Origin: Bugula neritina
Lineage: Eukaryota > Animalia > Bryozoa
Reading direction: 5' to 3'
Length of the DNA stretch: 37,337 nucleotides
NCBI GenBank assembly: GCA_964035545.1
Contig: CAXIUT010000218.1
Location: 1-37,337 of the forward strand
Position numbers and translations under genes: made by a program. Shown here piece after piece: positions 1-37,337 of this stretch. Numbering within the stretch: position 1 is the first letter of the stretch; the number at the start of each line of letters is the position of its first letter. The notes beneath the pieces were generated by a model, which saw only the letters and a program-made list of their open reading frames with translations, was not told the origin of the DNA and made no database searches.

Positions 1-87
1 CCCAACCCCAACCCCAACCCCAACCCCAACCCCAACCCCAACCCCAACCCCAACCCCAACCCCAACCCCAACCCCAACCCCAACCCC
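1..87 (+). repeat. Left telomere, (CCCCAA)n, 87 nt, with one inner CCCTAA variant
   Basis: C4A2 repeats run from base 1 (starting CCCAA) to 87, with CCCTAA at 78-83. This is the Tetrahymena-type ciliate telomere repeat. Confidence 0.98.
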
Positions 88-5909: not shown

Positions 5910-6584
5910 TCACTTTAGCTCTGAGACTACAGTGCCTTTAGCATATTTTATAACTGTATCATGACCATGTTGTAAAACAAATTGACTCATGTTGTTCCCT
6001 TTCAAATCATAACATTTGGAAAATAAGTTACTATTCACCTTAAGAAGAGCAAAACAATATATGCAAATACATACTTGAGGCAAATTCCATCCTAATAAAT
6101 TCAGTATAATTAGAACAAACCATATTATCAAAAAGATATATATTGTCCACCAAAAAACAGTCTGATTTGTACTTGATATTATCCTTTAATCGACTCTTGA
6201 TTAAAATCTCCATTGTTCTCCTCCATCTTATGAATACTAAACCCACCATCTGAGTCCGACAAGCAACCTACCAACGATATTTTTAGTAACCCAAAAATCA
6301 ACTGCAGCAGCTACAATCATAAATGCGAGCACATTAAACGTGCATGTGATGGTAGGCAGCATAAGATAAACGAAAACAACTCCTATTTTAACTACAATAT
6401 GAAGAAGAGCGCTAATGGGATTACTAGCCATAGCGCACATTGATGGCAAAACTGAATCTCCCTAAGGTTTAAAACTTATTCTTTAAACTTCTGTTTCCTT
6501 ATTTGTGTCATTTTGTTCATCCTTAAGTTCTATCTCATCTTTCTGATCTATCTTGTCATAGTAATGAGGTTTTTCTTATTGCAT
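5910..6584 (-). CDS. TVP23: TVP23/FAM18 Golgi membrane protein, paralog a
   Basis: Family motif DFWVTKNIVGRLLVGLRWW...W.FES. The frame is open from ATG 6584 to TGA 5910, with a possible in-frame 27-nt intron near 6462-6490. Confidence 0.9.
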
Positions 6585-6653
6585 TGATTATTGCTTTATA
6601 ATTTTTATTTAATCATATAAAATGTTAAATAGTTGATTGAGAATGATATGATG

Positions 6654-6734
6654 GGGGTTGGGGTTGGGGTTGGGGTTGGGGTTGGGGTTGGGGTTGGGGT
6701 TGGGGTTGGGGTTGGGGTTGGGGTTGGGGTTGGG
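6654..6734 (+). repeat. Internal telomeric tract 1, (GGGGTT)13GGG, 81 nt
   Basis: Perfect G4T2 repeats ending TTGGG, followed by A. Confidence 0.98.
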
Positions 6735-7272
6735 AGTTTTATTTTTGAACTTTGCTACATTTATAGTAAGAGTATGTGTTGAAGATTAGTAGTACTGCAC
6801 AGAATACACAGATTGTAATATGAGTCAGATTAATCTTCAAAACATTTATAACTGATAGTACTACCCAAATCAAACAAAAAAGAATTAAAGTCCACCAAAA
6901 TGCCTTATCACTAGCTCCAGAATTCTCTTTTTAATCCACTTTACACTCAAATTTCCAATGTTCTTCTCCTTCTTCGTTAAAATCAATCCACCATCTGAGT
7001 CCAACCAATAACCTTCCTGACACATTCTTGACAAACCAGAAATCCATAGCAGCTAAAATGACAACTATCACTAATACATCAAAGCTTCCAGTGATGAAAG
7101 GTAAGACTAAGTAAAGGAAAACTATTCCTATTTTAAGCAAGACATGTATTGCTGCTACTCCAGGACTAGAAGAATGGGATATAAAAGAAGGCATAGCACT
7201 ACTTTGGTTTACAGATGATCTCTAATTATCCTTAAGGATAAGGTTTTAGCCTTTTTTTTCTCTTTCGTTCAT
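6735..7272 (-). CDS. TVP23: TVP23/FAM18 paralog b, 3' end interrupted by telomeric tract 1
   Basis: DFWFVKNVSGRLLVGLRWW...WKFECKVD...YYKCSKVQKEN runs into the tract with no stop. The next in-frame TGA is at 6613-6615, beyond the tract. Confidence 0.88.
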
Positions 7273-7302
7273 TAACAATTTATTTTAAATTATACAAAGG
7301 AA

Positions 7303-9255
7303 TCACTTGGATTTAGGATAGAACTTACTGTGTTCGAAAGAAGCCATCATTTTAACATCTTTTCCACCTTCTTCTATCTGCTTAAGTAGTTCTGCTTCGC
7401 TATGAGCCTCTTCTTCACTCATTTATCTCTTCCTATCCATAAGTTCTTCATATTCTCTGTATACTCTTTTCAAATCTTTTTCGATGATTCCATAAAAAAG
7501 CATAGAAAGTCCACTTGCATATTTATCAAGAATTTTGATAGTATTGACTTTAAGATGTTAGAATACAACTTCTGAATAAGCAGATAGTTACCTTTATTTT
7601 AAGTGAACTTGATCATTTATTCGACTGATTGAGCATATGACAGTTTCATCTCATCTAGAACTTATATTTAAATATTAGTTCCTTCAGAAGAATCCAAAAA
7701 TAAAGCAATTATTTTTTATATATGATTTAGATTAATATTCTTTATTCTCTTGATACATTGTTCCTTATTTTTAATTTCAATATCAGGAACAAATAAACTT
7801 GTTAATTCACTTGAATATCTGTTTATTAGATTTTCTCTTGATCCTGCAACGGTAACAGCTTGTAAAAGAGCTTCCTTAAACTGATTACGTTTAGTTGTTA
7901 TGAATGAGAAGTTTTTCTGAGTGAAGATGCCAATAATCTAACTACCACTGATAACTTGAAAGATATTACGATAAATTGGATCCATCTATCCTTATTCAAC
8001 CATATCACCTAAAGACATAGATAGTAATTCTCCCATACCACCACTTTGTTGAACACTGTTGAATAAACCCATTAAGTTAATACCTCCTCCACTATTTTGT
8101 TATCCTTATTGTCCTGGTTGATTGTTAGGAACTGGAATAACAATTGAGTTTAACTGTTGACTAAGATTTGCTGAATTTAATTAATTTTGACTTGAAGGTT
8201 GTGGGGGATTTGAAACTTTTTAAGGTTATTATTTTTTTTAGATATTAGATTTCGGTACATTATTTTGTGTTTAAAGAGGATTTGTGGGAATATTTTTTGT
8301 CTATGATTCAGGTTTTGATACTGGATTTGATTCTGATTGAGATGATGTAAATTGGGAAGGTTGTTGAGGTTGAGTTGGATTTGGCTGCATATTTGCTCCA
8401 GTAAAAATATTTGAAAAACTAAACATGGCGTTGGGAGCCATCATCCCTCCAGGTTGGAGAAATTGATTTGCCAAATTTTGTAAATTAGGAATGTTCATTT
8501 GTGGAGGTTGCTGTTGTTGTTGAGATTGGGATTCAGACTGACTTTGTTGTTGTTGAGGCTGAGGCGGGAAAAATTGGCCTACCAAATTTTGTAAATTTGG
8601 AATATTCATTTGTGGAGGTTGTTGTGGTTGTGGTTGAGATTGAGATTCAGACTGACTTTGTTGTTGTTGAGGCTGAGGCGGGAAAAATTGGCCTACCAAA
8701 TTTTGTAAATTAGGGATATTCATTTGTGGAGGTTGTTGTGGTTGAGATTGGGATTCAGACTGACTTTGTTGTTGAGGTTGAGGTTGGAAAAATTGGTTTA
8801 CCAAATTTTGTAAATTAGGGATATTCATTTGTGGAGGTTGCTGTGGTTGTTGTGGTTGCTGTGGTTGCTGTGGCTGTTGTGGTTGTTGTGGCTGTTGTGA
8901 TTGTTGTGGTTGCTGTTGAGGTTGTTGGGGCTACTGTTGAGGCTGAGAAGGTTGTAATTTAGCGATTAGATGAATAGTGAGTCCAGATTATTTAACTATT
9001 TTAGCCTAAAATTACCATATTGCCCAATAGGCATATTGTCTAATAGTTGTTTTCCTGAATAGACAAGTCTTTGTTTCTAAATGGGTACTTTGATTTTCTA
9101 TTCAATTTTTATTTTAAGATCTCCAACAATCATCTGCATTGCTTCAATAGTACCTCAGGGTTAGTTTAAATGTCAAAAACTTCATTGCTCAATAGTTTAA
9201 CTTTGATATAGAAGTTGGATTCTTAAATAACTGGCTGGTTAAGATCTTCTGCCAT
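7303..9255 (-). CDS. N-terminal ubiquitin-like domain protein with Q/P-rich repeats (BAG6/Scythe-like architecture)
   Basis: UBL domain: FYIKVKLLSNEVF...VGDLKIKIEEKIKVPIEKQRLVYSGKQLLD. Three 20-nt GT-AG introns (9134-9153, 8996-9015, ~7572-7591) restore the frame to TGA 7303. Confidence 0.78.
8455..8840 (-). repeat. Coding tandem repeat, four units of ~105-114 bp
   Basis: The anchor CATTTGTGGAGG recurs at about 8496, 8607, 8721 and 8826. The unit encodes QPPQMNIPNLQNL(V/A)xQFF..QPQQQ(Q)SQSESQSQ. Confidence 0.92.
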
Positions 9256-9444
9256 TATGATTATGTATTTAATATCTTTTTAATCCTTTATTAGGTAAGC
9301 TACATGTGGATGAATAATATGAAATATTTGTAAAATTAATTAAGATCGTTATTAGTCTTATTGAATATAATATTAATTAATTGAATATGAATTCTTTTTA
9401 TTTTTTAAGAGTTTATTAAAGTTTCATTATTTCTAATAATTTTC

Positions 9445-10962
9445 ATGGGACTGTTAGGTAAGACATTGAAGGGAAGAAGCGCTAGACCAGGAGGTCTACC
9501 TCCTAAGAAAAACATTAAAATCCGACAAATAGCTAAAACCCAGGAAGAGTTCGATCAGCTTAAAAAACTTGCCAAGATGAAAAAAGATATTCTTCGATCT
9601 AAAATTTAAAGTTAGCACAAAATTGTTAATTTTAACAAGAAGAAATTACTTACTTATTGGAGAAAGATCATGAGAATAGCTAAAACAGAGTAGCTTAGAA
9701 ATTAAATTGATATTTACTCACAAAACAATCAAAGATAACTTGACTCCAAAGAGGCTTTTATACAGATGCTTGATAAAAACCTTGATTAATCAAACAATCA
9801 ATATCAGATAGCCATAAGAAATCATCTCATTCATATTGATACTCTTCTTTCTGTTCAAAATTCAAGAGTTCAAGGTTTAATGGAATAGTTCAGAAGAGAT
9901 GTAAATATACTTGAGCAGGAGTATCTTACTTAAAGACAGGAAATGGAACAAACTCATCATGATCATCTTAAAGAACTCAATGATATGATTGATACAGTTA
10001 AAGAATAAGATCGCAGAAAAGCTGAAGAAATAAGAACTGAGGAACAAGCTTTTCGTGAAGAAATCAAAAATAAAAATCTTGAAGAACTTCAACATATGAA
10101 ATTTAATCTTGAGGCTAAACAAACCAAGCATTATACAGAACTTTAACAAATGCATCAAAAATATTCATCTGATACTGGTAAAAAAACATAAGAGCATAGC
10201 AAAAATTTTGAAGACAATAAAAATATGACTATTAAGATCAATTAACTTGATAGAAATATCATTAGAAAAAGATCAAAAATAGATCTTCTAAAACTTAAAA
10301 TTTTACAACATAAAAAATAAAGTGGAGCTCGAAATAATGCTCTCAGAAAAGAAAAAGATAATATTTCGAAAAATTATCAAGAACTTAAAGAAAAAATGAA
10401 TAGATTCAGAGAAGAATAAGATCGTAGACTTAAATAACTAACCAACAATTCAAGAAATGCTGTTGAAAAACTTAAAGAGTATCTTTAAATGGGTGATAAA
10501 ATTCTAAAAACAGCTTAATTATGCAGAAGACTCTAAACTTAAAAAGAAAAGGTACTTCCTTTCTATGAATCAACAGTTGATGAAAGTTAAATTTCTTAAT
10601 AGTTGAAAAATCAATTCCAAGAACTATCTGCATAGGAGTATGAAGAATTCAAATATTTGAACAATTTCTTTAAAAGACATAACAAAGTTCTCCTGGATCT
10701 ATTGGCCATTAAAAAGCAAAAAGAAACTCTTGGAAAGGATAACACAATGTTGAAATCACTATTGAAACAATATTTGGATGGAATTTCTCTTAATGATTAA
10801 GTCTTAAGAACAAACAACCCTCTTTTCATTGTGAATAATCGCATTCAAATCAGTCAAGAACCAGTAGAAGAAACTCAAGGTCCAACCATTGTCAATGCTA
10901 ACTTTGTTCATACCAACAATATCAATCAACTTGGCAGAATGGCTCCTCAACGCTTCCAGTGA
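9445..10962 (+). CDS. DRC2: Dynein regulatory complex subunit 2 (CCDC65/DRC2)
   Basis: [32 protein letters not shown]...LDKNLDESNNQY..RNHLIHID and LCRRLETEKEKVLPFY match CCDC65 motifs. 505 aa, no intron needed. Confidence 0.88.
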
Positions 10963-11021
10963 TAACCCCATAAATTTATAAATTATAACTATCTTTATAT
11001 TTTAGTATAATACCATACAAA

Positions 11022-11765
11022 TCAAAATTAACATTTTCTTTTCTTTTCCTTTTTTAGTCTAGAACGGTAATACTCTTTCTATTAATTCAATTGTTTCACT
11101 TTTTTTTCATATTTATTTAAAACGCATTTGAGTTTTTAGATTATTTATTCATATCTATTATCTTATCTCAATTTAGACTGTTCTGATTATCTTTTAGTTA
11201 GCATAGTAGAATTTAATAAACTTTTCATAGCTTTCAGTCTATCTCCTGATAAATTCTATCTTTTATTATTATTGCTCTAACAGCTTTTACCACCTGTTAT
11301 CTCGTGTTTTGTTTCTAATCTATCAGAAATATTGATCTTTGAACTATAGTCATATTTTAATTTAGTAAAGTTTTTTCTTTTATCTTTTTTATCCCCTTGT
11401 TTGCCGAACTAACTCCAATTTCTTCTAACTTTTCTTCCTTTCATTTTTTAATCCTTCTTCACAGATTTACCTGATTTTCCTCTCCAATAATATCTAATAT
11501 TGACATGATTATCATGACCTTTGCTATTTTTATTTATACCTCCTTTACTACTTCTCCAATTCTTAGAACCAAAGGTAACATCTTCTATATTGTCTATTAA
11601 TGAACTTTTGTCTTTATTCTGTGATGGTCGAGAATCAAGACTGTGTCGTTTAGACAAAGTGTGAGGTTTTGTTTGAAAATATAGATGACTTGCTTTCAAA
11701 CTATTAAATTTGTGTTGAGGTTGAGGGAGAAGAAGTAAATGATATCGCTTCGAATGACTGCTCAT
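11022..11765 (-). CDS. Hypothetical basic protein with C-terminal coiled coil, 247 aa
   Basis: Open frame from ATG 11765 to TGA 11022 under TAR=Glu. Confidence 0.65.
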
Positions 11766-11835
11766 ACAATTATATCTATCGGTTATTATTTAAATTTTAA
11801 TATGACACTTTAAATAGATCTCATAATATTTTTTA

Positions 11836-11916
11836 GGGGTTGGGGTTGGGGTTGGGGTTGGGGTTGGGGTTGGGGTTGGGGTTGGGGTTGGGGTTGGGGT
11901 TGGGGTTGGGGTTGGG
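11836..11916 (+). repeat. Internal telomeric tract 2, (GGGGTT)13GGG, 81 nt
   Basis: Perfect G4T2 repeats ending TTGGG, followed by A. Confidence 0.98.
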
Positions 11917-11917
11917 A

Positions 11918-14050
11918 TCTACTTCATCTCAAGATAGCTAGATTTATGGAAAATGTCTCAATGGACCTGGAAAAGTAACCTTTAAAAATGGCAATACCTA
12001 TGATGGTAACTTTTTCAATGGATTACTTAATGGCTAGGGCACATTTACTTGGGCAAATGGAATAGTTTATTCTGGCTAGTTTACATAAAACAGGATTACT
12101 GGAAAAGGACACTATAAATGGCCTGATGGTAGTAATTATGAAGGATAAGTTAAAGATGGTCTCAGGCATGGTTTTGGAAAATATACTGTTGATGAGGCAA
12201 CCTACTAAGGAGATTGGGTTGAGGGTAAAAAAGAAGGAAAAGGTAAAATTGTATTCAAAAGTGGAAGTATTTTCTAAGGATATTTTAAAAGTGACAATAA
12301 GCAAGGATATGGAAAAATGTATTACTATCCTTCAGGAAATTTCTTTTAAGGATAATGGAAAAATGATTCTAAAAATGGAATGGGAACTATGAATTGGACA
12401 GACATCAGATAAAAATATGTTGGAAATTGGAAAAATAATCAACAAGAAGGTTGGGGCATTCATATCTGGTTGTAATCTAAAGGCTAAGGAAAATATATGA
12501 GAAATAGATATGAAGGAAATTGGAAATGTGGAGTAAGATAAGGATATGGAGTCTTTTATTATGCCAATGGTTCTAAGTATGAAGGTTATTGGAAAGATAA
12601 TATGAAAGAAGGATATTCTTTCTATACTGATTAAAATGGAAAAAACTCATTAATCCTCTTTTGTAAAGACAGAATGATAAAAGGAAATAAGCCAGATATT
12701 ATTGAAGGATAGGCTGTCAAAAAAATACCAAGTAAAAAATAGGTTTAACCTAATCTTTATTCTCTTTCTATGAACATCAATCATTTTTATGAACCAGAAA
12801 CTCCTAATCTGGAATATATTTTCAATTATTTGTTGAGAAATAATACCCAACTTAAAACCTGGTATAGAAATGCAGCTTCTTTTTATGATCAGCAATCTGA
12901 GTTTAGTTTTTGTTTGAATTTGGAAGGAGTATGGAAGATGATTAGAAGTTTAAAAATACTTGGAGATTTTAGTCTAGCTCAGTTTAATCGAGGAGTCCCT
13001 CAAAGTAATCCAGATATTGAACATATTTTAAAAATCACTCCTCAAGTACCTGAAGATAAAACAAATTATGAAAATATTTATTACCAAAGTCTTGGAAAAT
13101 AAATATAATCAGACCTTTAATCACTGAAAAATCGTAAAGTCCTAAAAGCCTAGATGCCTTTCAAAGAATACTTGGTTAATAACAGATAAAATAATATCCT
13201 TTTCAGGTAATTTGTTCATCTTTTAGTTTGGATGGCACATCATCTCGAGCCAACTCTTTAAAAACCTCAAAAATCAATTGAAAAGCTAATCACTAAAATA
13301 GCTCCTTTCTTAGATTCTCTCAATAAAGTTATCAAAGTATCAGGAAGTTAAAATATGAGTTAAAATAAATCATCTATAAGTAAAACTTAAAAAAATCTGT
13401 CTCCCTTTTATAGAAGTTTAAATAATGATATTTTTAAGACTTTGATAAAAGGAAAAGATGCTTCGCTACTAAACCTTAAAGATTAAGTAATTAGAGTTCG
13501 TTAATTATTGGGTTATGGCTTAATAAACAACTGTATAGGTTAACACGAATGGAGTTTACTTGAAAAAATTCTTTAAAAGTACTTTGATAATTAAATTTTA
13601 AATCGATAGAAAAATAAAAATTTGGAAAAATCAGTAATTTCAAATAAAATATTAAATGTAATGAACTATGAATTGATATAGTATGAGTTTGTAGAAATTA
13701 TTTATATCCTCTTTATCAAAAAGCTTCCCAGCACAAAAGAAACAGAGTAAAACAAGAAAAAATATCAAGAAGTAGTCCAAAATCTTTACACAGCTAAAAC
13801 TTAGCATGAAAAGCAAACATCTGCTAAAAAAGACTTTGTCAATGAAGTCAGATATATATCATCAGAAAGATCAAAGATTAAAGTAGCAATGAAATAAAAA
13901 AGAAAAGTTTTATAGGCTAAAAAAGCTGAATCCTAGGCTCTTGCTAAAGAGAAAGAAAGGTAGCATTGGTAATAGTTGATGATGGGAAAAGAAGACTTTG
14001 ATATAAAGGACCAGGAATTATAAGAGGATTAAAGCTAATTTTAAATATGA
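11918..14050 (+). CDS. MORN-repeat protein (radial spoke head RSPH10-like), start codon missing at tract 2
   Basis: About 9-10 MORN repeats, e.g. YEGEVKDGLRHGFG and YMRNRYEGNWKCGVREGYGVFYYANGSKYEGYW. The frame is open from the tract edge to TGA 14048-14050, with no in-frame ATG near the 5' end. Confidence 0.82.
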
Positions 14051-14064
14051 TTGATTGGTCTTTA

Positions 14065-14988
14065 TCATTTCTTAAATTCAACTAATATTGCAGTCATATT
14101 GTCTCTTCCATAAGGGTCAGTCTTTTCTGTTCCTGGATTCAAATTCTTGTCAAAAAAACTCTTTAAAACCTAACTACTATTTGATGTTTTAAGATTTTCA
14201 ACAAATAATTTTGTTAATTTAGCAGTATCGTTTTCATATTTTTACCAAATACCATCACAACCGATTATTAAAATCTCTTCTTTACCATTTCTAGGTGCTT
14301 CTATAATATCAGGCATGCAGGTAATTGGTTGTTGATTAAAAGGAATTCCTTCGATCTTTTTATGACTGAAATCACCAATTGATCTTGTGAGATTGAGTCC
14401 ATTAACTCTTCCTTGTATGATTGGTACACCAGCTTTTTCAATTCTCTTTTTTTCAATTGGATTTTCAGGTTTATGATCGAAAGAAAGAGGAACACATTTA
14501 TTATCCTGCCATAAAGCTGCTCTAGAGTCTCCAGCATTAGCACAGATAAATTTATCTTTTGTGACAAGAACAACAACAGCAGTAGCTCCAGATTGCAGTT
14601 ATCCTTCCTATGCTTTTCTATTTAATTATTCGTCTTTATATTTCAATAGTTCAGCTATTCCTGGTTTTAGTTTCATCATGAGTTCTACATGAATAAATGT
14701 TTCGGTAAGTGCTTGTCCATAGTTGCCTTCTTGAAGAGTTTTTCTTTTCAAAAAAACATCTAAAAAGTGAGCTGCGATATATTTAGAAGTTTAAGCTCCT
14801 CCATGACCATCAAAGACTCCAAATAGGCTGAAATCCTCGTAACCAGGTATTTATTTGTAAGCGATATAGGCATCTTCCATATTTTTACGCCATCCTTGCA
14901 TTTAGCAAGTTGCATATTTAATTAGCTTGTTCTCCTACCAACTTTGCTTTTTGGCTGTTATAGGTTTCTCCAAAAAATTGTTTCCCAT
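14065..14988 (-). CDS. Protein phosphatase 2C (PPM family)
   Basis: Motifs MQGWRKNMEDA, FGVFDGHGG, NAGDSRA, DHKP, LTRSIGD, GCDGIW and DNMT. N-terminal MG suggests myristoylation. Confidence 0.95.
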
Positions 14989-15062
14989 TTATAATTTCTT
15001 GCTAACACTACAATATCAAATATCAACAAATATATTCTAAATAATAATATTATTTTTAAATA

Positions 15063-15149
15063 GGGGTTGGGGTTGGGGTTGGGGTTGGGGTTGGGGTTGG
15101 GGTTGGGGTTGGGGTTGGGGTTGGGGTTGGGGTTGGGGTTGGGGTTGGG
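15063..15149 (+). repeat. Internal telomeric tract 3, (GGGGTT)14GGG, 87 nt
   Basis: Perfect G4T2 repeats ending TTGGG, followed by A. Confidence 0.98.
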
Positions 15150-16928
15150 AAAGGTGGTAGAGAGTTAAATCCTTTTTTGAGTTAATGTGATAAACATTAT
15201 AAATTTTTTATTTCTGGAAAGTTAGCTTCTACATGAACAGTTTGCCTGTGATTGATTGTATTTCTTATGTAGAGAAGCATAATATCTCCAATCCATTTAA
15301 CGATATGTGAGATATCATTATTTTATATTTAACCAATTTATCTAAGTTCTCTATAAGCTATGTCTTTCAGCAACAGTTCAAAATGTTCTTTTACTGAATT
15401 AATTACTAATTTACATTGATTTGATTGGGAATATTAAAACTTGATATCTTCATTAGCACTTACTATGAGGACATCTTTGTTACCTGCTGTTGCTTAGAGA
15501 ATCAATTTTGTTGAACCTGCTACTTTGTATTATTTTCTTTTTAATTTTAATAGATAGTTTCCTGGCATTAGAGTTTGATGAGAACCATTTAATAAATCTA
15601 AATTATAGTGATAATACTTGTTTATTCTACACCGAAACATCCTTAGTCATTATGTTATCCAGAAACTATAGTTTTTCTATCAGCATCTAAAAGAAGGTAA
15701 GTTATTGGATAAAAAGTATTAAATTTATTCATTTGATGTAAAAACATACCGACATTTCCTGATTTTTTAAGTTGAAACTTCAAATAAATTTCTTGTTTTT
15801 AATCACTTCCAAAACGGATCATTTATTAACTGACTATTGGAGAGTGAGATGAATATGAAACAATAAAAAATGATCTTATTTGTTCTTAAAATTATTGTTA
15901 AGTTAGTAAGAAGTTACCAGGAGCTATTGCTTATCCAGTTCCTTTAATAATAAGTTGTTCTAGGCTATAAGATAATTCTTTAAGAGTTCCTCTAAATTTG
16001 AATTAACCACAAGGATTTCTCAAATAAAAATATACTTTTCCTTAAAAATAAAAGATTGATATTAAATAAAAATGATACCCAGTTAAACCTAAAGAGTTAT
16101 TAGGGTTTTATCGAGAATATACAGGACAACCAAAATTTGGATTATTCATGTATTTATCAATAAGATGAGTTTTTACTAATTGTCTGTTTTCTTATGTTGA
16201 TTTATCAAGGTTAAATACTTTGATAGGGTACATGAGAAAGGTTTTAAAGACTTAAAAAGGATGTGTTTTTTATATTTTAGAAGTGTAGAATTGTTTAAGT
16301 TTGAACCAAGCTTTTTCCAAGAGACATGGCCACATATCAGTGTCTTTGATTGGTTTAGAAAAGACAGGTCCCTGTTATTTTATCGTTAAAATGTAGTCAT
16401 CAATGTAAATAACTTATCTTTTGCCTTCGCAGACAAAATAAATCGCAGCTATTCCATAGCTATTGGATTATGTAAGGATAATTCTTTCAATTAGTTGCGG
16501 ATATCGAGATAGAAAGCACAAAAAGACACCAAAATATTGCATAATTTAATCTATATTTATTGATTCATACCTCCAATAACGATGTTATTAGGGTGACAGT
16601 TTTAACGATTTACTATTTTGTACATTCGATTTCTTAAATTGGCATCTCTCTTTAGAAAAGCTTAGGGTCGATCGAATTTACAGTGTAATTATTTTTTTAT
16701 GCCTTTTAGCTTTAAAGGTTATATACTCAATGAATAATCTCGATATCTTCTTTAAGATTTCTTTAATCTATTTTCACAATCTTCTAAATCAGATCTGATT
16801 GAAGCTACTGGAGATCTGATACTATCTAAATGTTGAAATTTTCCCTCTTTTTAATCTTCTCCAAAACGGTATTAATAATGATTATATTTTTTTTAATCTT
16901 AGTCAGGTCCACAAAGATTCTGTCCCAT
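15150..16928 (-). CDS. Calpain-like protein, probably catalytically inactive, 3' end interrupted by tract 3
   Basis: Motifs IYIDDYI, MWPCLLEKAWFKL, LRNPCG and LMPGNYLL, with N-terminus MGQNLC. Introns of 20 nt at 16551-16570 and ~15598-15617. The frame runs into the tract, and the next in-frame TGA is at 15023-15025. Confidence 0.8.
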
Positions 16929-16946
16929 TTATATTTTATATAATAA

Positions 16947-17498
16947 TCATAAAGGTTGATAACTCTAATCATGACAGTTTCCGGGAGTCTAAAAACTAGT
17001 TCTCGATAATCCTACCATTGCGCTAACCAGAAGTGCCAAATTTATCAATCTGAAAGCTTAATTTTATAAAATCTACATGTTTTTAGCCATTTTGTTTAGG
17101 ATTACCATTTATAAAGACGTACTTAATATACTAACCTTAATAAGAAAAATAAGGTAGTTAGAAATAATTAAAATCCAAATGGAGAAAAAGTCATGACAAA
17201 ACCAACTGATATCACATGATCTCCAAATGATAGTAAAAATTAATTTTCCCATTTCTCTTTATAAATCTAAATATACCTGAAATGATCTTTCCATCATATC
17301 TATTTTAGGCAAATTACTTTATTTGTCCTATAGTTTTAAACTGTTTATATCTTTCTTCATCAGAAAAGCCACTAAGTTATATACAAAATAGAGTAGAAGT
17401 AAATCTATTCCAAATAAAATTCTTAGAACTCGTAAGTTGATGCTTCCATCTTGCATTTCGTCATAAATTGGAGAGCAAAGGTTGATTTCGTAGGCCAT
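16947..17498 (-). CDS. Hypothetical hydrophobic (membrane) protein, ~183 aa
   Basis: Open frame from ATG 17498 to TGA 16947 with hydrophobic segments. No homology recognised and the exon structure is uncertain. Confidence 0.45.
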
Positions 17499-17573
17499 TT
17501 TTATTCTAAATCTTTCAAATATTATAGTTCAAATATTCATAGTTTATAAAGAAAAGAATTTTGACATGAATAA

Positions 17574-19939
17574 TCACATATTTTTCTAGATTTACTTTCT
17601 GATTTCAATCGGTTGAGATTTCTTAATAACAGCCATTGCTTGTTCAATGTTGTATGCTTCAGAGGCTTTCAAAAATTTCGTACAAAGTTCGTTGCTCCAT
17701 TCTTATGATAAGTAAGGAAGAGTGTTCTTTTTACCACTTTCAACATATCTGTTATAATAGAATAGAGCCAGTTAAATAGGTTCAGGCTTTTTAAGATACT
17801 TTTCGATGAAGTTTAACAAATATTTACATCCTGAAAACAAAACAGTCACTTTATTTACTTTAAAAAGTTCAAGAGCAATATCTTCCCATATTCTTCCATT
17901 AACAGTATAAAAAGGTCTCAAAGTTTGAGGATTAAATTCAACATCACTTGTATCAGGATTCAAGCCATAACACCAATTTATCTAAGCCTTAGGTAATTTG
18001 TCAACTTTAATATTGTAGTCTAAAAAGATATCAGAAGCAGATTTTTGTGCATCTAAGAGAGTTGTAATATGATACAATTCTTCAGGAGGCAATTATTGAG
18101 AGTAGTTTGGGAATTTCGAAATGATTTTTTAAAGTTGTTGAGGTTCAGGTTCACCATCAACAGGAATAAAAGAAGTACAAATTTCAAGTTCTTTAAACTT
18201 TTATGAAACCTTTGTTGCATCAACAAAAAATCCTCTTTGATAGAATCCTTTGCACCAAGCCTTAAATTCCTTCTTTTCATGAGTTGTATATTTTTTAAAT
18301 CTAGACAACATGACCATAAGTGTTTTAGTTCTAACGAAGTGTCCTTTTAATCCTTTATCAAGAGGATATCCTAAAGCTTTAGTCATTTTGATCATAGGTT
18401 CTATATTAGGGAAATGAAATCTGAAGGTATCTCTATCTGTAGGTTGATTTAAATATCCACTATTGACACAATACCAAATGGCAACATCAGTTGGAATTTG
18501 AGTGGTAACAAACTGAGCCAATCCACACATACTTGCCATTGTATAGCTGCTTTTTAATCGATAAATCAAATGTTCTGTTGCATTGGCTTGAATAGCATTT
18601 AAATATTGAATTTATCCTTCAGAAATCAAATACCAAATAACTGCATAATACATGTTCAAGTTACCAAGAATCTTTCCACCTGCAATCAATTTAGCTATAG
18701 TAAAGTTACCAACAGTCACATGAGATTTATGTGTACCTAAAGGAATAGCTCCTAGCAATCTATTTTGCGTAAATGGGTTTTTCAATAATTTATCTGAATA
18801 TTTTACACCTGTGAAAGTTGATAATGAGGCCTTGAATTTAGCTCTTAGTTAAGGATAATTTAAAATTCTTAAAGGGCATGCAGCAATATCATCTACAATA
18901 TATTTTTAAACATTTAAAAGGAAAGGCTAGCATTAATCAACTAGAATTTGAGGAATATCTTCATCTAAAATAATAGGGCATTAGATCAAATTTTTAGATA
19001 AATCGTTTATTTATACTTATTTATCTATTTTTCCTTCTTGAGCAGTTTGGGCAGTAGCCATTTTATTTGATTTGATTTGACCAATGCTATACTTTCCTCT
19101 TAAATCACCACATAAATTAATTAAATGGCTAATCTTCTTTTAGAGATCAGTTGTTAAATCATCTGAAAAATATTTTTTACTCATAACTCCTGCTATCTAG
19201 ATAGCTCCATCAAAGTTATTATTTTATAAATGTTTTCTCATTTACAATCCATAATCAGTTTCTTTATTCATATTTTTTGATAACTCCTTCACTAATCTAG
19301 TTTTCATTGTGACTATTTGATTCTTCAAAGGAATATTACCTTCCTTACCCATATTGAGAGCAATGATTAGCCCCTAAATTAGATCATATTTTGATTCAAA
19401 ATTATCCAAAGTTATATCTTCAAGTGAATCCAATATCTTGTAATCTTCTGTAGTATAAGCAACAATAGCCTTTAGATCTTAATCTCTTTTCTTGGTAAAG
19501 ACTTGACTTTCACAATATCTAGAAAAAGGGCAAGTAACAGACATATTGACTTATCCATACCCTGTGCTAATGATATAACAAATAGATTTAGTAATCTTGA
19601 AACCAGTTTCCTTAAAAGTATTTTAGATAGTTTTATCACAGGCTTGAACATTAGTATCTCCAACTTAGCCATCAGTAACCAAAATAATATGAGAAAATTT
19701 CTTATGAACCACAGTACTGGCTACAAATTGAGGTTGTGTTCCCCAGTAGCTTTTCTTCCTTTAATCCATTATTCAAGTTCTTTTTTATTTGATTCTTTAA
19801 TGCTAGAGTTCCAAAGATAGTAATGAGATATATCTTTAGCATATTTGGTAAGAATGGTGTCAACTGTATCCCAATAGTTAGCAGATCCTCCTACTGATCC
19901 AGAATTATCAACAAATAAGGCGTAAGAATCTTTCTCCAT
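17574..19939 (-). CDS. vWA (MIDAS) domain protein resembling the baculovirus p94 family, with an apparent 1-nt frameshift at 19741-19744
   Basis: ALFVDNSGS (DxSxS), then ATG|GTQP, ILVTDG, MSVTCPF, ECPIILDEDIPQIL and NPQTLRPFY. The frame changes at a G4 run. Confidence 0.72.
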
Positions 19940-19994
19940 TAATTTATATTATTAGATATGTATTCCTATTCTTTTATATTATTATTAATCTGAG

Positions 19995-20069
19995 GGGGTT
20001 GGGGTTGGGGTTGGGGTTGGGGTTGGGGTTGGGGTTGGGGTTGGGGTTGGGGTTGGGGTTGGGGTTGGG
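19995..20069 (+). repeat. Internal telomeric tract 4, (GGGGTT)12GGG, 75 nt
   Basis: Perfect G4T2 repeats ending TTGGG, followed by A. It lies in a divergent intergenic region. Confidence 0.98.
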
Positions 20070-33608: not shown

Positions 33609-35557
33609 TCAAATAGTATTTTCTGAAGCAATAGTTAAAAAGGGATGTTTCAAAATATTTTATCCGTTCATTCTCTACTCAGGATTCTTTTTTATCAAGG
33701 CTTAGATAAAAGAGATAGCATTTTGAGACAAATAAGAAGGAAAATCTATTTTTTACACCTTCATAAATATAAGATTACGTTCATTATTTTTTTCATTGTC
33801 TATTTTCTACTAATATGATAAAAAGGAGCCTTTCCAACTAGTAACTCATAAGCAAGGACTCCTAAACACCAAAGATCAACTGTTGCATCATACTAGCTTC
33901 CTTCTAAAATTTCAGGAGCTACATAGTCAAACGTACCACAATATGTCTTTCTTCTATCAGTGCAGATTGTAGCCCAACCAAAATCACATAATTTACCAAC
34001 TCCGTTAGACATAACAATGTTTTCAGGTTTGATATCACGATGAGCAATACCTTAGGAGTGAAGATAAACTACAGCTGAAACAATATCTTTTAGTTTAGTT
34101 GCGGCATCTTTTTCTTTAAGTGTTTTATTTATTTTCAGATGAGAAAACAATGTACCTTCTTCCATATACTACAATATAAGATAAATGTATTCTGAATCAT
34201 CGAAAAACCCAAATATTTTCAAGACATTTTAGTGATTACAAAAACTTTGTATTTTTATTTCTTGACTTAATTGACTTTACATCATATGCGACTTTATTAC
34301 TTGCTTAGGAATCTTTTTAATAGCAAAAAGAAGGTTTGTTTCTTTATGAAAAGCCTGATAAACAACTCCAAATTTACCTTATCCAAGATTTTTCTTTAAA
34401 TCAAAGTCATAAATGCTAAGTTTTTTCTTTCCTAAACTACTACTATTTTTGATATTTTTTGTTTAAGCAATCTGTCTTAGATCTTTAATATTTTTGTAAT
34501 CTTTAGGTTCTTAAAACTATTTAGTTTTTCTTCCTTTTATCGGTGATTCTATTGAATAATCAGGAATATTTTTAGATGAATGATTTTTAATTTTGGCCCA
34601 GAAAGATTCAGTGCTTTCCAAGGTTTAAACATTCTTGAAATTATTGTTATTTCCTTTTAAATTTGTTTGTTTGTACTCGAAATCAGTTGATCTTTTAGTT
34701 TCTTTGGGAGTGTTATATCCTGAACTGATTTTTTTATACAGATCTCTTGGTTTTTATTTTTCTTCTGGATTTTTATTTGGAAAAGATCCATCGCTTTGTT
34801 TTCTAGATGACTTTATTTATTATTTTTTCTTTAAATAGGTTGGTGAGCCTACATCATATTTAGAAAAGTCAGATGATTTATGTAATTAAAGTTTAAACGT
34901 AGAAGGAGTTTAAAGTGTATTTTTATCTTGAGTTTGTTCACCATAACTTGTTCCATATAGTCTTTTTCTTACTGGAGATTCGACTTCATTTTTATCTTTT
35001 TCATAAGCATAAGATTTTCTAACATTATCAGATACTTTAGTTTCACATATTTTTTGAAGTTACTGGATGATTTGTTCCTTTTTAGATAATCTTTAAATTA
35101 TTTTGGAATAATTATCACCAGTATCGTTTAAAATATGACTTGATTCATACATTTTTGAGTTAGTTTATTTTTTATTTTAATATTTAAAAGATTCTTTTTT
35201 ATCTGGTTCATGGACACTAACTCTCTCAGTTGATATTTGGTACTTTGAGGCTGATTTACATTGATTTAAAGGAATATCGAAAAGATTACCTGTAACGTTG
35301 TCTTTTTTCTCTTTATAGTCAATATTATTGTTTCCTCTTACAGTTGAAACGGTAAGCCTAAACATATTATCATTATTCTTAACTTATAGGTTATTATTGA
35401 AAGAAGGAGGTATTAATAGATTCGGGCTTGGTGCTAATTATAAAGTTTAATTTTGGGTTCTTTTTTGATACATGGAGGAAGATTGTTTACGGGTATCAGC
35501 TACACTAGAAGTATACAGTCTAGAGGATGTATTGCTATCAATTCTTGAGCTAATCAT
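33609..35557 (-). CDS. Aurora-family Ser/Thr kinase with long disordered N-terminus
   Basis: Motifs [21 protein letters not shown] and DFGWA...[15 protein letters not shown]. One 20-nt intron at ~33760-33779. Confidence 0.92.
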
Positions 35558-37244: not shown

Positions 37245-37337
37245 GGGGTTGGGGTTGGGGTTGGGGTTGGGGTTGGGGTTGGGGTTGGGGTTGGGGTTGG
37301 GGTTGGGGTTGGGGTTGGGGTTGGGGTTGGGGTTGGG
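37245..37337 (+). repeat. Right telomere, (GGGGTT)15GGG, 93 nt
   Basis: Perfect G4T2 repeats to the end of the window, starting 57 nt after the AP-4 mu stop. Confidence 0.98.

Follow-up and report, generated by a model that had tools for sequence, protein, structure and literature searches.

Telomere tracts inside a 37-kb ciliate contig most likely mark alternative chromosome ends, written over native sequence during assembly

Introduction

How can four full-sized telomere tracts stand inside a contig that already begins and ends with telomeres? This question is raised by contig CAXIUT010000218.1 of the Bugula neritina assembly GCA_964035545.1, which was analysed over its entire length of 37,337 nucleotides (nt) and is referred to below as the window. 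The four internal tracts are numbered 1 to 4 from the left, and the corresponding junctions are termed J1 to J4 (Table 1). A preliminary description had presented them as telomeres inside one molecule, which does not hold, as the tracts replace native sequence length for length. The explanation favoured here, with a probability of roughly 85%, is that the assembler overwrote a read-through chromosome of ~37 kb with the telomere tails of shorter isoforms while preserving its coordinates. The tracts most likely mark real alternative telomere addition sites, that is, chromosome ends, and internal telomeres are almost certainly not a physical feature of one molecule.

Telomere Tracts in the Window

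Tracts were located by an exact-pattern search, by Tandem Repeats Finder and by direct reading of the letters. The four internal tracts are perfect (GGGGTT)n arrays, which Tandem Repeats Finder scored as 100% matches with no indels, and no tract match is expected in a shuffled window (100 shuffles). All four carry the G-strand on the plus strand, none of them is followed by a C4A2 partner, and the window has no N gap. The positions, sizes and polarity of the tracts and the missing C4A2 partner had been described in this way before, and so had the sizes of the pieces between them (about 6.7, 5.2, 3.2, 4.9 and 17.3 kb); these were all confirmed.

Together with the two terminal telomeres the window has six tracts, all of which open with GGGGTT and close with TTGGG, giving each a length of 6n+3. 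The shared end phase and the size of 75–93 nt suggest that the telomeres are short, under tight regulation and defined in their terminal nucleotide. The TTGGG phase is not absolute, as an 82-nt tract elsewhere in the assembly (L052) closes with GGGG. An A run behind all four internal tracts was considered as a possible signal and was judged to be chance, since tracts elsewhere precede other bases.

Gene Order and Replaced Sequence at the Junctions

Relatives were sought with the stop-free part of the MORN-repeat gene as protein query against JGI, ENA and Logan metagenome contigs, and matching proteins were found in metagenome contigs at 60–86% identity. The relatives' contigs (L066–L075) have a G+C content of 0.44–0.49, which indicates related yet distinct ciliates. 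The gene order DUF846, DUF846, MORN, PP2C, calpain, large open reading frame (ORF) and TPR, with Pfam names confirmed on the window, is kept in these contigs across all four sites, and no telomere repeats occur in them. The collinear precursor that had been proposed for the window is borne out by this order, which also rules out concatenated unrelated molecules and library chimeras. The exact junction-flank pattern had no match in JGI metagenome contigs.

Orthologues at J1 run 25 amino acids and a stop beyond the residues abutting the tract, with an alignment reaching 6736; by this comparison tract 1 covers the last 25 codons and the stop (78 nt) of DUF846 gene B plus ~3 nt. At J2, orthologous MORN proteins have 23 residues, Met first, just ahead of the residues that follow the tract, which covers ~12 nt of leader and, in the MORN-repeat gene itself, the ATG with the first 23 codons. 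The coordinate offset between the window and L070 changes by −11 across this site, not by +81. Tract 3 covers the stop codon and downstream sequence of a small minus-strand gene; the minus-strand alignment reaches 15149/15152, up to the first base past the tract, and the stop of the orthologue comes at once. At J4, which lies between divergent genes, the offset between the window and L066 changes by −16 across the site, not by +75. The offsets and the lost start and stop codons indicate that the tracts replace native sequence and are not insertions. A true interstitial repeat, or one that was healed and rejoined, is additional to its flanks or lies physically joined between them in single molecules, whereas each tract here takes the place of native sequence of its own length.

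All four sites are intergenic, with distances that are inferred from the orthologues: ~3 nt past the stop at J1, ~12 nt before the ATG at J2, ~74 nt from the PP2C ATG at J3 and, at J4, ~55 nt upstream of an ATG (19939). Between PP2C and the next gene the relatives have ~1.2 kb with two extra ORFs (L066, 12313–13650), compared with only ~150 nt at this place in the window (15000–15150), and contigs from other sequencing runs are spaced like the window. The additional ~1.2 kb looks like a species difference rather than sequence masked by tract 3.

Independent Sequencing Runs across the Junctions

The second and third pieces of the window were found in six runs belonging to three studies and three organism labels, and four of these runs were compared over window positions 10000–15900. 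Contigs X2-9, X2-14 and X3-15 bridge J2 and J3. The last of these, which is 17.6 kb long, ~1.3% divergent and from another study, spans both junctions. The number of letters between the flanks in the bridging records is exactly that of the window (97 at J2 and 103 at J3). According to the Logan paper, the 31-mers within the contigs of one accession are all distinct by construction, which makes a perfect hexamer repeat of 81 or 87 nt impossible in these records; they presumably hold unique non-telomeric sequence of equal length. A third masked stretch, at 11018–11062, left the bridging records unsplit, in keeping with a genuine block of mismatches at the tracts.

Some further features of these runs were observed. 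X1, X2 and X3 share loose ends before 13858, X1 and X3 also have loose ends behind 14218, and one other X3 contig touches only 13858–13875 and 14201–14218. The edges of this ~360-nt stretch (13858–14218), which lies where the MORN and PP2C genes converge with their 3′ ends, are common to some other sequence. One X1 contig has a 4-nt insertion (GATC) after 11333 which accounts for ~1/3 of the summed depth there, indicating a polymorphism within the X1 sample.

A Direct View of the Overwrite at Scaffold C21

In scaffold C21 of the same assembly, 200 N link two contigs that end in telomeres (L029, G000:C21:46053-49084), in the order G4T2, gap, C4A2. As isoforms or alleles of a single locus, these contigs share an overlap of several kb, so that the 200-N gap is a scaffolding join of chromosome ends. 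The locus is present in two copies, L028 and L029, which are 99.9–100% identical. An 86-nt G4T2 tract in L028 faces 89 nt of unique sequence in L029, with identical flanks. Close to the left end of L029, a C4A2 tract of 137 nt is followed by a unique island of 21 nt and then by the terminal telomere; the island is found in L028 at the exact coordinate predicted if the tract overwrote 137 nt with coordinates preserved. Comparison of the two copies shows that, at this other locus of the assembly, a tract overwrote native sequence with the length exactly preserved.

Pairs of kinase matches with identical scores were observed at C170:27618-28307 and 33765-34454, at C149:8964-9476 and C159:9642-10154, and at C21:43733-44245 and 50138-50650. 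This suggests further loci that were assembled twice as overlapping isoforms; the C21 pair is the only one of these that was examined.

Assembly-Wide Pattern of Tract Ends

The assembly was searched for points at which a tract ends on its 3′ side and other sequence begins. This pattern was found 339 times in the forward and 64 times in the reverse orientation, in nearly every small contig (~400 tracts). As contig orientation is arbitrary, a biological cause should give a ratio of ~1:1, and the 339:64 bias therefore indicates a direction-dependent assembly step. In 30 loci around sampled tract ends the tracts measured 45–117 nt and so belong to the same size class as the terminal ones.

Upstream of 43 addition sites no position was informative within 30 nt, so that no conserved motif was evident, and the upstream 60 nt are ~80% A+T. 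A signal of the type of the Tetrahymena chromosome breakage sequence (Cbs) or the Euplotes E-Cbs was likewise absent upstream of these 43 sites, the downstream side being overwritten. In the scan of the 30 loci no clearly conserved domain crossed a tract. The tract in the SDHA gene (C231:18141-18234) lies in sequence that is not conserved, 47 nt upstream of the FAD-binding domain, and is uninformative on insertion versus replacement.

Proposed Origin of the Internal Tracts

The contig would represent the long read-through form, a macronuclear chromosome of ~37 kb. Some molecules would end early, at the base before one of the four tracts (Table 1), and would be capped with ~75–90 nt of G4T2. 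The assembly would accept an overlap between a read of the short form and one of the long form in spite of a short telomere tail that does not align. In the contig as output, this tail would be retained and an equal number of bases of the long read skipped. Each internal tract would then be the real telomere of a shorter molecule, lying over 75–87 nt of native sequence. In miniasm-type overlap-layout assembly a short unaligned read end is tolerated and the position of the next read is set by its projected start, with the result that its overhang replaces an equal length of the previous read. The geometry of L029 and L028 is the same as under this rule, and a layout step, rather than the consensus, probably causes the overwrite.

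Alternative chromosome ends should show read-through molecules, collinear flanks and telomere-ended molecules. Read-through is seen in the bridges of J2 and J3 and in the read-through copy at C21, and collinear flanks are seen in the gene order of L066–L075 across the four sites. As to telomere-ended molecules, the contig holds full-size perfect tails which must derive from reads, and the X1 contigs break near the sites. The preliminary description had offered two options for the tracts. The option favoured here is that read tiling brought short-isoform ends into the contig, from an alternatively fragmented collinear precursor, with template switching no longer needed; heal-then-rejoin junctions are not supported, given the length-for-length replacement. 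Nor do the tracts cut the window into separate pieces, as the 37-kb read-through form appears continuous.

Several points weigh against this explanation. Pile-ups of telomere-ending reads at the four sites are inferred from assembled sequence rather than from raw reads. An overhang-tolerant arc rule of the miniasm style leads one to expect C-rich tracts in the direction of traversal, whereas most tracts are G-rich in the deposited orientation, opposite to this expectation. The tract and its counterpart at one site in C21 are not equally long (86 and 89 nt, a difference of 3 nt), in copies that are also distinguished by an indel. The argument for native sequence of equal length at J2 and J3 is drawn from record coordinates and the distinct-31-mer rule, not from the letters. 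Finally, the X1 contigs break ~10 nt inside the tract region of J2 and not exactly at the addition site.

The short forms may be regular products of macronuclear fragmentation. At somewhat better than even odds, the sites are programmed intergenic sites of alternative fragmentation, 3–6 kb apart and a few to tens of nt from a stop or start codon, giving nested isoforms of 6.7, 11.8, 15.1, 20.0 and 37 kb. The organism would in this case be an oligohymenophorean with the peritrich code, a minichromosomal macronucleus like that of Blepharisma or Oxytricha, and short (~80–90 nt) telomeres of uniform phase.

Alternative Explanations

The overwrite could have arisen in consensus or polishing instead of layout, if the unclipped tails of abundant short-isoform reads outvoted the rarer long-isoform bases column by column. 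Such a process would also preserve length and would also yield perfect tracts of telomere-like length. It would, however, treat left and right ends symmetrically, leaving the 339:64 bias unexplained, and long-read aligners normally clip such tails, so that we regard this origin as improbable.

An origin in the cell is considered very unlikely. Telomerase would have healed a broken macronuclear end, which would afterwards have been rejoined to the neighbouring sequence or extended into it, and tracts that are perfect, full-sized and of one polarity are what this would be expected to leave. However, a deletion equal to the tract length would be needed at every site, genes would lose their start or stop codons, and the C21 locus has a read-through copy with the native sequence; contig orientation being arbitrary, moreover, a strand bias measured against it is not biological. 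Least probable of all, with a chance close to negligible, are chimeras formed in the library or by amplification, or a concatenation of unrelated minichromosomes by ligation, by template switching after run-off synthesis or by scaffolding. Run-off synthesis with template switching would produce same-polarity G-strand junctions, and telomere-ended contigs were indeed scaffolded in this assembly, with 200 N between telomeres in L029. Nevertheless, the flanks are natural neighbours in the relatives, the spacing is equal in runs of other studies, and the window has neither an N gap nor a C4A2 partner.

Features of the Window

The coordinates of the telomere tracts and adjacent genes are collected in Table 1.

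Table 1. Telomere tracts and genes next to the junctions in the window; isoform assignments are those of the favoured explanation.
Feature	Position	Strand	Length (nt)	Remarks
Terminal C4A2 telomere	1-87	.	87	14.5 perfect repeats opening the contig; probable left end of the longest isoform
Tract 1 (J1)	6654-6734	+	81	Probable tail of a shorter isoform (end at 6653), over native sequence
DUF846 gene B	6735-7300	-		Paralogue of gene A (5910-6560); 3′ end absent from the contig
Tract 2 (J2)	11836-11916	+	81	Probable tail of an isoform ending at 11835
MORN-repeat gene, body	11917-14050	+		Start absent in the contig; PF02493 on orthologues
PP2C phosphatase gene	14065-14988	-		PF00481, E 1e-37; ATG near addition site 3
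Tract 3 (J3)	15063-15149	+	87	Probable tail of an isoform ending at 15062
Tract 4 (J4)	19995-20069	+	75	Probable tail of an isoform ending at 19994
Terminal G4T2 telomere	37245-37337	+	93	Probable right end of the longest isoform

Two repetitive regions of the window were also observed. Tandem repeats of 114 nt and of 9–27 nt at 8471–8942 belong to a Gln/Pro-rich low-complexity region of a minus-strand gene (7470–9101), and show weak matches to low-complexity arrays of the host. The region 2356–2590 has 71–73% identity to 228-nt tandem units in a small contig (C249) and in a host contig (C4), and probably represents a ubiquitin unit that matches arrays of polyubiquitin.

Origin of the Contig and Genetic Code

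The window is an entire contig (C227) of an assembly of 216 Mb in 321 contigs. The large contigs measure 10.9–35.6 Mb, and (CCCCAAA)n was found at the start of those sampled (C3, C5 and C7; L044, L045 and L046). The G+C content there is 0.57 over the first 3 kb, by which these arrays appear to be kilobases long. The HSP70 genes on C1, C2 and C8 have zero in-frame TAA or TAG codons, which assigns the large contigs to a host with the standard code. Genes of the small contigs, by contrast, are rich in in-frame TAA and TAG. When orthologous positions that are not themselves TAA or TAG were counted, the TAA and TAG codons of the window were aligned with Glu at 81 of 102 positions in L066 and 70 of 96 in L070. 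The TAA/TAG=Glu code that had been proposed for the window is upheld by these counts; EF-hand and PP2C motifs agree with it, and TGA is the sole stop.

The in-frame TAA and TAG of the small contigs and the alignment with Glu identify the source of the contig as a ciliate cobiont in which TAA and TAG encode Glu. Judged from sequence, the window is DNA of a ciliate co-sequenced with a standard-code host; the term peritrich code refers here to its genetic code and not to a placement in Peritrichia. No second copy of the window pieces was found in the rest of the assembly, and seven ORFs of the window had no exact match in the protein collection.

Comparison with Known Systems and Significance

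Alternative telomere addition sites (ATAS) have been described in the minichromosomal macronucleus of Blepharisma stoltei (PMC9942806), and Paramecium bursaria is cited in the Blepharisma paper as minichromosomal (PMC7702705). As in these two ciliates, telomere-bearing molecules would end here inside longer contigs, giving nested multi-gene isoforms of minichromosome size. In Blepharisma, however, the sites were found by mapping telomeric reads to contigs without the repeats, whereas here the repeats are written into the contig. The present organism also differs in its G4T2 telomeres and TAA/TAG=Glu code.

Oxytricha trifallax shows alternative chromosome fragmentation (PMC3558436), in which, as proposed here, a collinear precursor gives rise to overlapping isoforms that share genes, with the sites between genes. 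The Oxytricha molecules are gene-sized nanochromosomes with G4T4 telomeres of 20-nt duplex tracts, in contrast to the isoforms of ~6.7 to 37 kb and telomeres of ~80–90 nt in the present case. Within the paper library searched, there was nothing on the macronuclear chromosome structure of ciliates with the peritrich code and no description of this assembler artefact. The alternative chromosome ends are most likely a known kind of structure in a lineage for which no description was found.

In practical terms, ~400 places in a public assembly carry telomere repeats instead of ~50–140 nt of real sequence. Start codons, stop codons and stretches of coding sequence are lost at these places, which invite misreadings such as telomeres inside genes or junctions filled by telomerase. 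Any assembly of a ciliate or a cobiont that was produced by an overhang-tolerant layout may share this defect. For the biology of the organism, the finding suggests that a ciliate in which TAA and TAG encode Glu has a minichromosomal macronucleus whose alternative ends are dense.

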